A stretch of 57,793 nucleotides of DNA, the filler included, from Sluysia triapertura (lineage: Eukaryota): the NCBI GenBank assembly GCA_046118255.1. It is 4 parts of 4 records of this genome, joined end to end, with 100 filler letters (N's around TTAATTAATTAA, not from the genome) between each part and the next. Parts side by side here need not be neighbours in the genome. Positions count along the whole stretch, not along the records: positions 30,035 to 42,920 come from JBJNIA010074608.1; 3 more parts are not named here. One strand, given 5' to 3'. The notes beneath the pieces are model-generated. The model saw only the letters and a list, made by a program, of their open reading frames with translations, was not told the origin of the DNA and did not search any database. This document shows, piece by piece, positions 30,035-37,399 of this stretch; the first letter of the stretch is position 1, and every line of letters begins with the position of its first letter. A program made the position numbers and the translations under genes.

Positions 30035-30089
30035 TATTACAAAATATTTAATATAGTATTATCGTGTTATCGCCCTTAAATGAACTTGT

Positions 30090-30140
30090 ATTCACCACCG
30101 CCCCCTGGATCCTTGCAGCGCCCACTTTGGGAATCCATGA
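30090..30140 (+). mobile_element. hAT (Charlie-like) right terminal region
   Basis: accgccccctgg...gcgcccactttgggaatccatg resembles the reverse complement of CAGTGGTTCCCAAAGTGGGCG-type hAT/MITE ends. Confidence 0.5.
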
Positions 30141-30260
30141 ATTATACAATTAAAATTTTTTTAAAAATCCATATAAAAAGATTCTACAAATAAATTATAT
30201 TTGGCACTTAAATATAAATCTATGTATATGATATATAACTATAACTTTTTTAATATCCAG

Positions 30261-30352
30261 ATTTCTGTGCTGAAAACAAGATGTTCAGATTTACAATCGA
30301 TTCTTACGAAACTCTTATTGACAGTATTTTGGCTTGTCAAGCTTATTATTCG
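30261..30352 (+). CDS. Possible internal exon upstream of the SH3 exon
   Basis: Bounded by tttttaatatccag| and |gtaatg, and open in two frames. No homology recognised. Confidence 0.3.
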
Positions 30353-30879
30353 GTAATGATCGGGATATTCATCAAATACGCACATTATTTCAAAAATCAA
30401 AATATACTTCTGATAAAAGGTTAATATTATTTACATTTATTAGTTCATTATTAAGTATGAATAATAATTTACATCCAAAATAATATTAAACTAAAAAAAT
30501 AGCTCAATATCTATATTTAAATATCTATTTTTAAATACGAGTTTAAAATTATAGTCATAATTATTTTAACTATATGTCACAATCTAATCTCATAAGATTT
30601 AAAATGTAATTAAAAATTTTTGTTTTGTTCCTACATAATTTGACTAAAGATTGATCATACGAAATGAGAAATTCTAGAAGTCTTACTATGTGGTTAACAA
30701 TAATCAGTGCTCTAAAGCTTTTAAAACGATTATGGAACCATAGTTTTACTGTTCTGAAATTGCAAAAGTCATTGATTTAATTCTAATTAACTCTACATAT
30801 TGTTTAACAGATAATCGTTTTCTTTCTTCACAATCATACTCTACATTGATAATAACAAATTGAGTGTATTAAATGCAGG

Positions 30880-32160
30880 ATGTATCTGACTCATTTATGT
30901 AATCCTAGTAGCTGGAAAATTGCTTTCAATTGAAGTAGGCGAATTAAACATTTGGGTTACTGATTCGTGCTGACTAACACGATATATATAAAGAAATATT
31001 GCTAAACGACACTTGGACGTTTCAGAACTAAAAAACGTTCATTATTAACTGTTAATTGAGCACTACTGGTAAAACATCTTCAAACAAGATTCAGTGCAAA
31101 TTTTAAAATATTCACATGATTGAATGATATCTTCATTATCAATTTGGTCTGATCAAAATTGAGTACTTTTATACATGTTTATTTTAAGGCTTTAAAATTT
31201 ACAATAATAAATATAATAAAAAGGTAGTGTTGTAGTGATGATGAGTTGGCAACAGACATTACATATAAAGAGATGTTAATAAAAGGGATTTTATTGAAAA
31301 GATTTAATAAAATGATTTTATTATACGTTTGTCAATCGCCCGGAGAAAAAAATGTGATACTACAGATATTGTAAACGTATTTTATTTTGATATGGTTTTT
31401 GTTTGTGATGAGGTTTATGTGGTTGATGGTGATAGTGAATGAGATGTGTGTTATATGTTGTAGAGTGACACCACACCAACATACTTAAATACTTGAATTT
31501 CATTGCAAGGCATTGTTCTGTGGATCAAGACGATATTTAGATAACTGACTTTTTTGTTCACATAGTTTTAGACACTGAAATACTTGAATTGACTTTTAAG
31601 ATATCGGTAGCATTCTTAAATTGTAACAAAAATGAATTCAATTCAATATTGTTTATTTTATCTAGGTCAAAAAGTAATTGTTTTTCGCTTAATTTGCATG
31701 AACTCAATGTGTAAATTTATTTTTTCAAGTGAACTTTATTTCTTATTGATAAAGTTAACTCGTTTTGATTAACGACCATTGCCAGAAAAAAATCATTATG
31801 AGTAGTAATATCCTTCAGCCACCTTATAAATTGTTTTTTAAAATTTTACTTTTCGCATGCTATTTTCTTTTATAATTTGGCGGATTCTTGTCCGAATATA
31901 TTGATTGCTCTGCAGCGATTTTGACTTGCTGAATTGACATTTGTTTCACTTTATTTATGTTTGTTCACATCATATTTGCTTCTTAATTTGTCATTTTTTT
32001 CCCTAACTACACTTGAAAATCTTAAACGTTGCAGACTTCTCCGAATATTAAAAGCGTGTCAGTATTCTTTATCCACATAACACATTTTTCTTTAAGTTGA
32101 ATTTTTCCTTTTATTTATACTTCCCGTTTTGGGTGGATATGCTTTTTGGAAAAAAAATTT
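30880..32160 (-). mobile_element. Highly decayed integrase-like (gypsy/Ginger) remnant
   Basis: Fragments KAYPPKTGSINKKEK and IYRVSQHESVTQMF (cf. AYRTSxHESTxxTPF). Many stops. Confidence 0.3.
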
Positions 32161-32599
32161 TAACTTTAACTTTTTTTCTGCATAAATTAAACAATTCTTA
32201 TTAAATAATTTCTTTACTAGTTAATTAAATTTTCTGTATTTGACTATTGTATTTATTTTTACGGAAACATGTGAAAACTTATGTTCATTAAATTTAAAAA
32301 ACATGCATACTAAAATAACTGATTATTTATTAGATTATTGAGCACCACCGTGAAAACATATTCGAATAATTACACAATATTATTAGTTATGATGGTGGAC
32401 ATGTAACCAAAAATAAATTTTTTGCAGAATCTTTTTAATGCATACACAAACAAAATTAGATGTGTTTTAAATTTTGGATATACTTTGCAACACTACTTAT
32501 TTAAATTAATTTGTTCTATTTTATATAATAAATTTACATAATTTTATTTACGTATATTTATTAAACAAATAATTAATCTTAATCTGTTTTATAAATAAG

Positions 32600-32913
32600 A
32601 TCTGACATCGGTAAATCAACATAACACTCACAAATCACATTCGTCGTTGAGACTAACACATGAGATCTCGCAACAAGAACAACAGTATTATCCACAACAA
32701 ATATTAGGTACAGTAGTTGTCATGTTTGATTACAAAGCTGAGAATCCAGATGAATTAAATTTAGAAATCGGTGAATTGATTAAAGTACTTGATAAAAATC
32801 TGATTGATGACGGTTGGTGGAAAGGTATTAAGAAAACTGGTGAAGTCGGTATATTTCCTAGTAACTTTGTAGAACCTGTTATCGACAGTATTATGTCTAA
32901 TTCGATGAATAAA
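32600..32913 (+). CDS. SH3-domain exon, CD2AP/SH3KBP1(CIN85)-like
   Basis: VVVMFDYKAENPDELNLEIGELIKVLDKNLIDDGWWKGIKKTGEVGIFPSNFVE is a canonical SH3 domain. Bounded by aataag| and |gtatgt. Confidence 0.88.
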
Positions 32914-33690
32914 GTATGTTTGATTATAAATTTAATATCTAAATTAAAATAAGTGTTTATATAAATAATGTTTCCATGAAATAATTAATTTATTTAATAT
33001 ATCAAAATATAAATTGATTTGATGCAAAACAATATGTGCGCTGCGAGATTTCCTAATTTTATTCTTCAAATTACATTAAATAATCCTTTTTACCACATAT
33101 CATTTACACTTAATTACATTGTCATAAATGTATTTAAATAATTAATATTTATCAAAATTAGTCAACTAACCCTAATAAATTTTGGTAAAGAATAAAATTT
33201 ATATTTATTAATTTAAAACATTTTTATTAAATTCTAAACGTAGTTAAAATGGTACGTTATATAGTTTTTCTGTACTTTAAGTGATTGTAGTGTTCAACTC
33301 ATTCATGAACCTCTAACAAACTCAACCACAAATATTCAATACACAGTGCACTTTTGCAACATCTTGCACACATAACAACACCTAAAATATAACACACTTC
33401 AAACATATTACATTAATATATCTTAACTTAAATAGAATATAACATATTCAGATTATGATGATTTATCATTTAACATTACTTCAATCCGCCGATATCGCTC
33501 CACCCAACTACATCAACACTGTGTGTGAATTTCCATATCTTCCTTTTATTATTGCTATTATTATTTTCTTTAGTATTGTTAACACCAAAATTGATTGTTA
33601 AAATGCACTAAGTTTGCATAATAATTACTAAATAAACTTGTCCAAAAACAATGAAACATTTAATGATAGACAATTTAAATCCTCAATGAG

Positions 33691-33860
33691 ATGGACAGAA
33701 GTGAATTATTTAAAACCTCCAGAAAAGTAAAACATAATTTGGATATCAGTGAAAAAGCCATAAGTCAAATTACAGTTCAATTATGTTTTATCCTTGCTAC
33801 TATTGTTGGTTACAAAACGTACGTAACAAAACCAATGAGTTGTTACATAACTACACCATC
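33691..33860 (+). pseudogene. Innexin 5' fragment (N-terminus, TM1 and first loop Cys)
   Basis: MDRSELFK...SEKAISQITVQLCFILATIVGYKTYVTKPMSCY resembles innexin TM1 plus the YxGxPIxC motif. It ends abruptly. Confidence 0.6.
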
Positions 33861-33862
33861 AT

Positions 33863-34382
33863 GTGGCTGGTGGTTGTAATTCCAAATATAAAGATATTGC
33901 TATTGAGCAACTGAAATGTTGGGTTCAGAAGTTCTACGATCTTCAAATAGATAGAAATTTATTAAAGATATATTGTTTACTGTCCCGGTCAGCTGAGTTT
34001 AACATTGTCAGATAGTAGCAATATTTATGTTTTAGATGCAAAAGATTGATGGCAAGCAAATGGTTGTTATATGTGGTATATTCAACCTTATACGACCAAT
34101 TTAAAAAGTATCATTGAAAGGTATGAGGAAGAATGTAAATACGAGAGTCATATTCCAAAACTTGTACCTATTGGCGCATCAGTTCAACAATGTGAATATA
34201 AAGATATTTGCTTTCATTTAATCAAATTGTACATAGATAATACATATCAATCATGTGATTTGATATCAGATCCTCGCAATATTAGTAATGATTCACAGCA
34301 TCGCTTGGTATGGAATTGGTTCGAATCTTGGCATTGTGCAATATTATTGACTAGTCTTGGTTATACCGTGGAAAGCACTTAA
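33863..34382 (+). pseudogene. NUP98: Nup96 (C-terminal product of NUP98-96) internal fragment
   Basis: KDIAIEQLKCW...LLKIYCLLS/GQ...D*WQANGCYMWYIQP...KDICFHLIKLY...DPRNI...SWHCAILLTSLGY matches Nup96. Frameshift near 33985 and TGA at 34047-34049. Confidence 0.8.
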
Positions 34383-34399
34383 CCTTACTCATAAACTGA

Positions 34400-34705
34400 C
34401 TAATTATAATAGTTTATATATGAATGATTCAAACGATGATGATAAACAAAATTTGAAACAAATTAAGTCTTCGGAATTTGAAAACATTGATAATAGAATT
34501 AACAAATTTAAAAATACAGTCAACAATTTACAAGATATTTCAGAAGTTTTTGTTGTCAAAAATCAAGAACAAAGATTTTGTAAGAAAAGAATTGGAAATA
34601 ACATGTAGATTTAAGTCAGAATCTAAAACTGTGAAGAGTTTGCCTAAAGATAGAAAAAAAATGAGCAGTGAATTCAAAAAATTGAATAATACAATGTTAC
34701 CTTGA
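34400..34705 (+). pseudogene. Frameshifted coiled-coil C-terminal fragment of unknown source
   Basis: ORFs 34357..34608 and 34478..34705 join into one heptad-like sequence through a single frameshift near 34570. Confidence 0.35.
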
Positions 34706-35276
34706 GTTTTAATTCTACGTTGTTATATATTGATTTTTTAAATATAAAGAATTTTTATTTTATTTAAACGAGAAAAATATGCTATTTATATCCGTAAATA
34801 GACAGTGTCGTGTTAAAAAATAAAATAATCATTTTGTTTTAAATTGTAACATTTTAAACTAAATTTGATACCATTTGAATCAGAACTAAAAATCAAATAT
34901 TTATATGCATGTGTTTAGAGAAGTTCGCACTAACTTTAGATTTAATATAATTTTGTTTTAATGCAATAGCTTTATTTATAATTATTAGTTAATTATTATT
35001 TATAAAGTACGGATCATTTTTAATATGTATAGCAATTTAATTTGAAATTTAATGATAAAAATATAAATTCCTTATTTTATTCATATTACTATATCTCTAT
35101 TTTAATTTCGGTTACAAGTGATTCTAATTGATTTCATATATATGTAGTACTATATGTTGGTTTTTAATAAAATTAATTAATTCATTTTTCAAAAAAGAAG
35201 AAGGTCTCAATACATTTTGAATTTTCAAAAGTTTTAAAACGAATTCGACTTCTAATTGATTATTCCATATTTTAAA

Positions 35277-35850
35277 ATGTCCGAACACCGAAAATTCGAG
35301 TATGGAGATGATCTTAAAGAATTTATTGCTAGAAGAGAGTTTGTTGCGGTTACTGTTTGCGAACCCAAAACAATTAAGATTCGATATGCCGCGAAAGTCA
35401 CAACGACGAAGAGTACTCTTAAGTCAAGACGACGAATTCTAAAAGAAAGTATTGATATGGAATTTGTAGTTCTGAAGACTCTGAAACATCCAGATATGAT
35501 CATAACTTACGATATATCCGAAACATTAAATAATGTCATTTTAGTATTAGTGCATGCACACGAATGAGAACTTTTTGAAGTTATTTCAATTGAAAAAATT
35601 AATGAAGATGAAATATCTATGTTTGTTAATCAAATTTTTCTTTCTGTTTCTACAGAAATTGATTTGTCGGAAATGCGTGATAATCTTACTGTTGAATTTA
35701 AAGATATTAAAGTATATTGTGTTCACGATATTTTTATCGTTAATATTGAATACATTTGTGTTTATTGTTATAGCTTATTAGATGATTTTAATTCACAACG
35801 TTGCCACAGTCATAAGGACCTTAAGTCCATTTTTCTAATTTTAAATCTGT
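35277..35850 (+). pseudogene. DAPK: Death-associated protein kinase (DAPK family) N-lobe fragment
   Basis: YAAKVTTTKSTLKSRRRILKESIDMEFVVLKTLKHPDMIITYDISETLNNVILVLVHAHE*ELFE...MFVNQI matches the DAPK basic loop and GGELF. The Gly-rich loop is lost, there is an in-frame TGA at 35565-35567, and a degenerate HKDLKS follows. Confidence 0.8.
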
Positions 35851-36539
35851 AATTGCTAATTTCGAAATTAATAAAAATATACCGCGGCCATCACAATGAT
35901 ATTTACTATTATTTATTTTAAATTTTGAATCTATTTCCAAGTTATTTATTTTAGATAAAAACAATAAAATCTATATTTCGCTAATATTTACTATAAAATA
36001 AGTACTTGAAAAAATATTTCTCAAATAGAAAGAACTTTGCTTTTTTCTTAAATATTTAAATCTTCCAGTAATTTAACAGTTTCAAGTAGCTGGTTATATA
36101 TTTTGAAGCAAATGTCACGTGACTTAGTATCCTTGTAAATTCTGTTATATCTTAATTGTTTTATTTCCAAGATGTATTCAGGGCTTACTTAATGTAAGTG
36201 TGAGATAATTTATAACTTGAGGGTTACACATTTACTGAGATTGTGGGGCGCGCAATAGAATTTTGATTATAATTTATTTTACAATTTGCTCCTATAAATA
36301 AATTGTCGCATCTCTTTAATGGATTCTAATGAATCTGTAGAATAACACCCAAAATCAGTTATAACCTCTTTAACATGAGCAAGCAAGAATGCATAATGGC
36401 TCGTTTTACATCATGTGTATAATTTTATATCTATGTAAAATTCAAAGAAATATTATAGCAAATTAACTCTTTCGAATAATTCTGTACTATATGCATTGTG
36501 TAGAAACATAAACTTGTTTATGTATTTCTAATATGTAAA

Positions 36540-36730
36540 TATTAATTTTGTAAATATAATTTTGAAAATTTATAATAATTTTGTATTCATATTTTTGTAA
36601 ATTATTTTTATAATTTCGAAAACTTATTTATTAATTAGAATTTTGTAAATTTATTTAATCTATATTTTTGAAAATTTGGAAATTTATTTAATTTAAATTT
36701 TTGAAAATTAATTTATATTTCTGAAAAACC
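36540..36730. repeat. Degenerate tandem repeat of ttttg(t/a)aaat units
   Basis: About 8 recurrences. Confidence 0.6.
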
Positions 36731-37399
36731 TTTTTTGCGGATTTAATAATTTTATTATGTATTTAAATCAGGAATAAAATATAAATAAAATTATTTAATT
36801 GTCTTGAAAGAAAGAAGTAATATAAAAACAGAACATTCACAGAAGATAAATTCACAACACTAATTTTTACCAGAATTTGGAAATTAGTTTCGGTGACTCG
36901 AAAGTAACAAATTTTCATTTACATAGTTTCAATTTCGAATGGAAATTTCGTAATTAACCTCTAATTTTTATTGTCATTCGGTGGACTTTAATACAAATAT
37001 ATATTTTTATTTTTGTATTTTAATAATATATATTCGATTTTAGAATTGTTGTTATATAGATTGAGAAGATAAGTTAAATGTATTAAGTTGAATGAAAAAG
37101 AATTATATACAAATAATAAGGATTTCTGATTACAGAAATTAGTTAAGGGATTTTGAGGAATTCAATTTAATGGTATACAAAGAACCTTTACATATTAATA
37201 ATACGAATATTGTATACGAATTCTTATTTAAGTAATTAATATTCAAGAAACTGATTAGTTTTATAGTTAGTGCAACGTATTATTATCACTAAGGCAATAT
37301 TAAAGACCCTCCATAATAGTATTAAAAATTATTATTGTATAACCAAGTGTAGGAAATTTTTCGTATCACTTTTGTTGCGTCTTTAAAACTTGTTAATTA

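Follow-up and report, generated by a model that had tools for sequence, protein, structure and literature searches.

Two decayed gene copies, of Nup96 and of a DAPK-type kinase, and an innexin-like reading frame in Sluysia triapertura

Results

A cluster of pseudogene debris on one strand. Positions 33691-35850 of the window are non-functional pseudogene debris, comprising two certain relics (one of Nup96, one of a DAPK-type kinase) and one doubtful, innexin-like piece. The window is the whole stretch of DNA analyzed, 57,793 nucleotides of the Sluysia triapertura assembly GCA_046118255.1 including filler, and the cluster lies in the part that comes from record JBJNIA010074608.1 (positions 30035-42920, hereafter the piece). 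An earlier note had described the cluster as a chimeric cassette of four same-strand coding fragments within 2.2 kb: an innexin 5′ end, a Nup96 middle, a coiled-coil 3′ end and a DAPK N-lobe. The shared strand and the coding-like character of the fragments are borne out, but the second and third fragments belong to one and the same Nup96 copy, and what remains of the "four-gene chimera" is a pair of clear pseudogenes and a single doubtful piece. The earlier note also regarded the cassette as its best candidate for an undescribed system, whereas the data agree with modes of pseudogene formation that are already known.

The piece contains no N and has 26% G+C by composition count. It holds 10 stop-free ORFs of at least 80 codons, compared with 1.4 in composition-matched shuffles, with 9/10 of these falling within 32.6-35.85 kb, on the plus strand or antisense to it. 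The region singled out in the earlier note is a real island of coding-like sequence. Its features, with the evidence for each in brackets, are as follows.

32599-32952, plus strand: intact SH3 ORF, comprising an SH2 end, a linker and the C-terminal SH3 (Pfam SH3_2, E 2.8e-15)
33691-33879, plus strand: innexin-like ORF of 62 codons, Met to TAA, frame 1 (sub-threshold Pfam match)
33890-33985, plus strand: Nup96 segment A, frame 2 (Pfam profile positions 36-72; KDIAIEQLKCWVQ against relatives; P0001 residues 7-22)
33987-34364, plus strand: Nup96 segment B, frame 3, past a +1 frameshift and containing a TGA (tblastn, Pfam, human Nup96)
34351-34608, plus strand: Nup96 segment C, frame 1, C-terminal tail (LVLVIPWKALNLTHKLTNYN against P0001 residues 309-328)
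34609-35276, no strand assigned: AT-rich spacer of ~20% G+C, from the Nup96 stop to the DAPK start (composition)
35277-35567, plus strand: DAPK N-lobe, Met to TGA (phmmer, DAPK1)
35568-35852, plus strand: same-frame continuation of the DAPK ORF, 94 codons to a TAA at 35850-35852 (ORF reading)

The neighboring SH3 ORF, which ends in a stop codon at 32950-32952, finds its best PDB match in GRB2 residues 135-216 (over query residues 11-97, E 1.2e-15), and this resemblance makes it the probable final coding exon of a GRB2/drk-like gene. In GRB2/drk proteins the C-terminal SH3 domain closes the chain. Because this domain is terminal, the cluster is more likely to lie downstream of the SH3 gene than within one of its introns, where the earlier note thought it probably lay. 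A search for an SH2 exon 5′ of the SH3 exon gained no support from Pfam or PDB. By eye, the ORF at 31228-31371 bears a faint likeness to the FLIRES...PG part of SH2 (ILLYVCQSPGE), which would suit an upstream exon of a GRB2-like gene; Pfam and PDB give it no backing.

Other parts of the piece are also unusual in composition. A lone GC-rich island at 30080-30140 (caccaccgccccctggatccttgcagcgccc...) sits amid DNA of 25% G+C, and AT-rich tandem arrays occur at 36534-36727 (period 33), 39161-39223 (period 21) and 42293-42546 (11-48 nt), the last being a region where G+C falls to 10-13%. On the minus strand of 37300-39140, G+C rises to as much as 0.30-0.32 with strong strand skew, and there are several ORFs (e.g., 38662-38838 and 38819-38965), none with a Pfam match, as well as an internal repeat of ~303 nt (37967 / 38270); this stretch may be a further decayed gene or element. 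An Rfam search of the piece matched no family.

One disabled Nup96 copy accounts for two of the four fragments. The assignment to Nup96 made in the earlier note holds up by several routes. Pfam Nup96 (PF12110) matches 34071-34379 over profile positions 108-200 with 36.4 bits (cut-off 25) and, in a different frame, 33863-34012 over profile positions 36-72 (E 0.012), and human Nup96 residues 549-651 match the copy with E 1.5e-6. We queried 1.8 billion representatives exhaustively with the Nup96 piece in HMMER; among the 6 hits, the best relatives are P0001 (from a Logan contig, 38% identity) and P0002 (from an ENA metagenome contig, 44%). Two ape NUP98 fragments among the six were left out of further comparison, and P0003 proved to be spurious, an ankyrin protein. 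In tblastn, P0001 residues 23-152 match 33987-34361 with E 3.4e-20, and a frameshift-aware protein-to-DNA alignment places P0001 residues 7-152 on 33938-34361 with one shift and one stop. The shift is +1 and stems from one surplus C in the run CCC at 33984-33986; the stop is an in-frame TGA at 34047-34049. We considered tiny introns as a means of frame repair and rejected them, since the alignment is residue-for-residue continuous over the shift.

The copy begins in mid-domain. Nup96 homology reaches its 5′ limit at ~33890 with everything before Pfam position 36 missing, and none was found 5′ of that point; a candidate extension into the innexin-like region in another frame gave no significant alignment. 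A complete, uninterrupted Nup96 domain in a full-length nucleoporin is thus not what 33890-34608 contains, and the copy as read is disabled and cannot act as a nucleoporin. We also observed an exact 14-nt repeat (AATATAAAGATATT, encoding KYKDI / EYKDI) at 33885-33898 and 34195-34208, one copy at the 5′ margin of the Nup96 homology, the other within it. Chance alone would give ~0.4 pairs of this kind in 3.4 kb, and the repeat could be chance or junction microhomology.

The third fragment, previously described as the coiled-coil 3′ end of a separate gene, is the tail of the same copy. The first 20 residues of segment C, LVLVIPWKALNLTHKLTNYN, match P0001 residues 309-328 (BLASTP E 7e-4) with a score of 48 that was reached by 0/2000 and 0/1000 shuffles. 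Segment C ends in a TAG at 34606-34608, and the distance from motif to stop is similar in all three proteins (segment C, P0001 and P0002). Conversely, no counterpart of P0001 residues 153-308, a stretch ~50% or more identical to P0002, was found anywhere in the piece. The tail match and the missing conserved middle together imply that the second and third fragments belong to a single Nup96 copy that has lost ~156 codons internally, and that the deletion junction falls at 34351-34365. An alternative in which the third fragment is collinear with P0002 residues 103-151 was discarded because its score is no better than those of shuffles.

The Nup96 copy is continuous across an intron site shared by its relatives. 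We compared two metagenomic Nup96 relatives, L002 (region 540-1000, ~45% G+C) and L003 (region 230-470, much higher in G+C by eye), exon by exon, with exons never joined into a spliced model. Both have a phase-0 intron right after the residues W-L-Q-S-R. In the window, KDIAIEQLKCWVQ aligns with the last residues of exon 1 in L002 and L003 (p ~0.0007), P0001 residues 7-22 align downstream of the intron site, and the copy is uninterrupted there (tgg gtt cag aag ttc / tac, 33934/33935). A second intron of L002 is missing from L003 and from the copy in the window. The earlier note had remarked on the lack of short introns, and indeed none interrupts the Nup96 pieces or the ~570 nt of the DAPK ORF. 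Continuity over the shared site, the sole positive indication of an RNA route, would favor a cDNA origin, the relatives compared being only 38-44% identical. The Nup96 copy, P0001 and P0002 also have in common a 6-residue insertion (W-x-W-x-x-S before WH) that vertebrate Nup96 is without. The shared WLQSR intron and the insertion, as seen in L002/L003, appear to mark an unsampled lineage related to the organism in the window.

A truncated copy of a DAPK-type kinase lies downstream. The ORF at 35256-35564 matches the DAPK1 N-lobe with E 2e-11 (phmmer, over 35310-35549), followed by DAPK2 and DAPK3 (1e-9 to 3e-8), while CaMKII reaches just 2e-4. The N-lobe is therefore closest to DAPK1-3 rather than to other CAMKs, as the earlier note had it; Pfam Pkinase gives 18 bits on this piece, under its cut-off of 31.7. 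The start Met at 35277 sits at the position of the native N-terminus and the beta3 Lys (YAAK) is retained, but the glycine loop is without glycine (IARREF for GSGQF), and the frame meets a TGA at 35565-35567. Of the 94 codons that follow in the same frame, only the first ~25 residues look DAPK-like by eye (ELFEVISIEKINEDEISMFVNQIF). This continuation contains neither HRD nor DFG and yielded no PDB match at E up to 10 and no Pfam kinase match, the two ORF pieces having been searched separately rather than as read-through sequence. Recognizable kinase homology is thus lost after ~125 codons. An AATAAA lies at 35870, 3′ of the continuation. To judge from these lesions, the DAPK copy is truncated and disabled and cannot act as a kinase.

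Between the two relics, the spacer at 34609-35276 holds the sole A-run of at least 7 nt in 33000-36400, an A8 at 34654-34661. It could be 3′UTR, 5′UTR or intergenic DNA.

The innexin-like ORF is doubtful. Pfam Innexin (PF00876) profile positions 3-39 match residues 19-55 of this ORF (33745-33855) with 16.2-16.5 bits against a cut-off of 25 (E 0.005-0.006), and an unrelated ORF in the same Pfam screen scored E 0.0024, which places the innexin score near noise level. The innexin-like ORF has no PDB match (E up to 10) and no match in the protein database or the atlas, and no other innexin motif (YYQW in TM2, paired EL cysteines) occurs in the whole piece of genome, the fragment itself being too short for the absence of motifs to exclude a true N-terminal piece. 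An innexin origin of 33691-33879 is on these grounds somewhat probable, its identity remaining doubtful. From the end of the Pfam match (33855) to the first supported Nup96 residue (33890) the gap is at most 34 nt; the join without spacer reported at ~33860 is therefore short but not strictly zero. The earlier note had named HMM searches as a check on its assignments; these recovered Nup96 over the Pfam cut-off and DAPK by phmmer, but left innexin, which lacks any independent match, below it.

The disabling appears recent. Over 495 codons, the homologous Nup96 and DAPK frames contain only 2 stops, compared with ~44 expected from base composition. A stop would result from ~6% of possible point changes, which puts the divergence since the loss of constraint at K ~0.02 substitutions per site, and the scarcity of stops suggests recent disabling, on the order of 2% neutral divergence. 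The changes in the DAPK glycine loop are too many for neutral decay of 2%, suggesting either that the DAPK copy diverged while constrained or that the age estimate is too low.

Lesions this recent imply that a surviving parent copy should be nearly identical. Exact look-up of 19 ORF products of the piece in a collection of 15 billion proteins, and of one in a contig index, found none recorded; word-based protein searches, queried with P0001 and with the kinase and innexin pieces, returned nothing but P0001; and a metagenome scan with the Nup96 piece returned nothing. The same kind of scan with the SH3 exon recovered relatives at ≤51% identity only. Hence neither a parent gene nor a second copy of either relic was found in the protein, contig and metagenome collections searched, and since a near-identical parent is expected, the genome appears to be absent from those collections.

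Hallmarks of mobile elements and retrocopies are absent around the cluster. No ORF of at least 45 aa encodes a transposase, RT or Rep/helicase domain, no LTRs were found in the piece, and no retroelement lies near the cluster. A scan for GC-containing hairpins found no Helitron hairpin with a CTRR-T end near the cluster, the sole hairpin in the piece being at 40921. A search for TIRs in the piece gave only low-complexity AT-rich inverted matches (50 pairs). One of these pairs, 33115-33151 / 36536-36572, brackets the cluster (37 nt, 81% complementary); its right arm lies inside a tandem-repeat array. No poly(A) tail follows the Nup96 stop, only the A8 46 nt past it, and no target-site duplication stands out above chance, direct repeats occurring at the level expected by chance for AT-rich DNA.

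Discussion

We lean slightly toward an origin of the relics as cDNA copies made by reverse transcription with template jumps. Spliced Nup96 and DAPK mRNAs would have been reverse-transcribed into intron-free copies, template jumps of the enzyme would have produced the 5′ truncation and internal deletion of Nup96, and, if the innexin piece is real, a further jump would have fused the innexin head to the Nup96 middle. Both relics would now be inert, doing nothing. The earlier note had likewise entertained an RNA route, and the part of that idea that stands is the lack, in the Nup96 copy, of the intron common to L002 and L003. Target-primed reverse transcription normally leaves the 3′ part of a transcript. 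The cDNA route is weakened because the DAPK piece is instead a 5′ part, and because poly(A), target-site duplication and a nearby retroelement are all missing. Double template jumps during LINE reverse transcription that give rise to chimeric pseudogenes have been documented (PMC2104539; review PMC5470649).

The main rival to the cDNA route is DNA duplication followed by deletions, which we consider unlikely. On this view, innexin, Nup98-96 and DAPK genes would have stood in a tandem row on the same strand of a chromosomal segment that had been duplicated or was decaying locally, and deletions would then have removed the innexin 3′ and Nup96 5′ parts together, the middle of Nup96 and the catalytic core of DAPK. 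All pieces do lie on the same strand, the innexin-like and DAPK pieces each have a start Met and their own upstream AT-rich or CA-rich DNA, a 668-nt intergenic-like spacer separates the Nup96 stop from the DAPK start, and the missing poly(A) tail and target-site duplication are what a DNA-level origin would leave; moreover, a single deletion between same-strand neighbors yields a fusion of 5′-A to 3′-B without reverse transcriptase. However, at least three large deletions would be required within ~2% divergence, the parent Nup96 would have to be without the intron common to both relatives and DAPK intron-free over 570 nt, and we saw no retained intron remnants. Fairly unlikely, too, is the absence of any chimera, with the innexin-like ORF arising by chance or being the true first exon of a live innexin whose intron or surroundings took in two independent pseudogenes. 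Its Pfam score is within the noise of the screen, stop-free ORFs of 66 codons are not rare (shuffles give ~9 of at least 60 aa), a donor-like GTAATT lies at the end of the ORF (33875), and the two homologies may be up to 34 nt apart. Yet no further innexin exon or hallmark motif occurs in the 9 kb downstream, the Pfam match begins at profile position 3, a natural distance past the Met, and by reading, a hydrophobic helix is followed by K-x-Y-V-x-x-P-x-x-C as is typical of innexin TM1/EL1; the direct abutment with the start of Nup96 would also have to be coincidence.

Capture of the fragments as cargo of a Helitron, Pack-MULE or similar nonautonomous element, which the earlier note had proposed, is very improbable. 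Several gene pieces in one orientation within 2.2 kb are the typical look of such cargo (PMC4224331, PMC6544945), and an inverted pair does bracket the cluster, but that pair, with one arm in a tandem array, belongs to a set of 50 AT-rich matches of a similar kind, hairpin-CTRR ends, credible TIRs and the enzymatic domains searched for are absent, and DNA-level capture normally keeps introns, whereas the conserved intron site is continuous here. Still harder to credit are live genes whose frameshift and stops are assembly or sequencing errors or recoding. In favor, the frameshift coincides with a run of CCC, stops are remarkably scarce in the frames, and both nonsense codons are TGA; against this, the Nup96 copy is missing the entire N-terminal part along with 156 conserved codons of its center, and the kinase is without glycine loop, HRD and DFG. 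We rejected TGA recoding because the two codons align with different residues (Ser, Gly) in relatives.

It is quite improbable that the cluster is one product of a fragment-joining process recently active in this genome that left many young mosaics. Such a process, itself a long shot, might be RT template switching without poly(A)/TSD or an unrecognized capture element, and would, just as speculatively, stitch 5′ ends to the 3′ parts of other genes (innexin-Nup96, DAPK-unknown). Should many mosaics of similar youth turn up across the genome, they would indicate that exon shuffling has an active source in an animal lineage that is AT-rich, fast-evolving and poorly sampled, a claim that one locus by itself cannot justify. 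For annotation, the consequence is that ORFs at 33691-35852 should not be recorded as innexin, Nup96 or kinase genes.

Compared with the families from which they derive, Nup96 (PF12110) and the DAPK family of CAMK kinases, the two copies show clear sequence homology but are truncated and disabled. They resemble Helitron and Pack-MULE captures (PMC4224331, PMC6544945) in that several gene pieces share one orientation within a few kb, and differ in that the diagnostic termini (TC...hairpin-CTRR; long TIRs with a 9-bp TSD) were sought and not found, introns are absent and no second copy is known. The likeness to 5′-truncated processed pseudogenes, i.e., LINE retrocopies (PMC5470649), is that the Nup96 copy is intron-free where relatives are split, starts in the middle of the CDS, runs to the native stop and carries a frameshift and a nonsense codon. 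Unlike such retrocopies, the cluster has no poly(A), target-site duplication or LINE, the Nup96 copy has a large internal deletion, and the DAPK piece is the 5′ rather than the 3′ part. Finally, template-switch chimeric retrogenes, such as the tripartite chimera of Magnaporthe (PMC2104539) and U6-L1 chimeras (PMC4476161), generally contain a retroelement or small-RNA module and end in poly(A), and the innexin 5′ partner is unproven here; like the cluster, however, they join the 5′ portion of a transcript directly to the 3′ portion of a different one, both on the same strand and nearly or wholly without spacer, and an internal jump of this kind could account for the deletion in Nup96.
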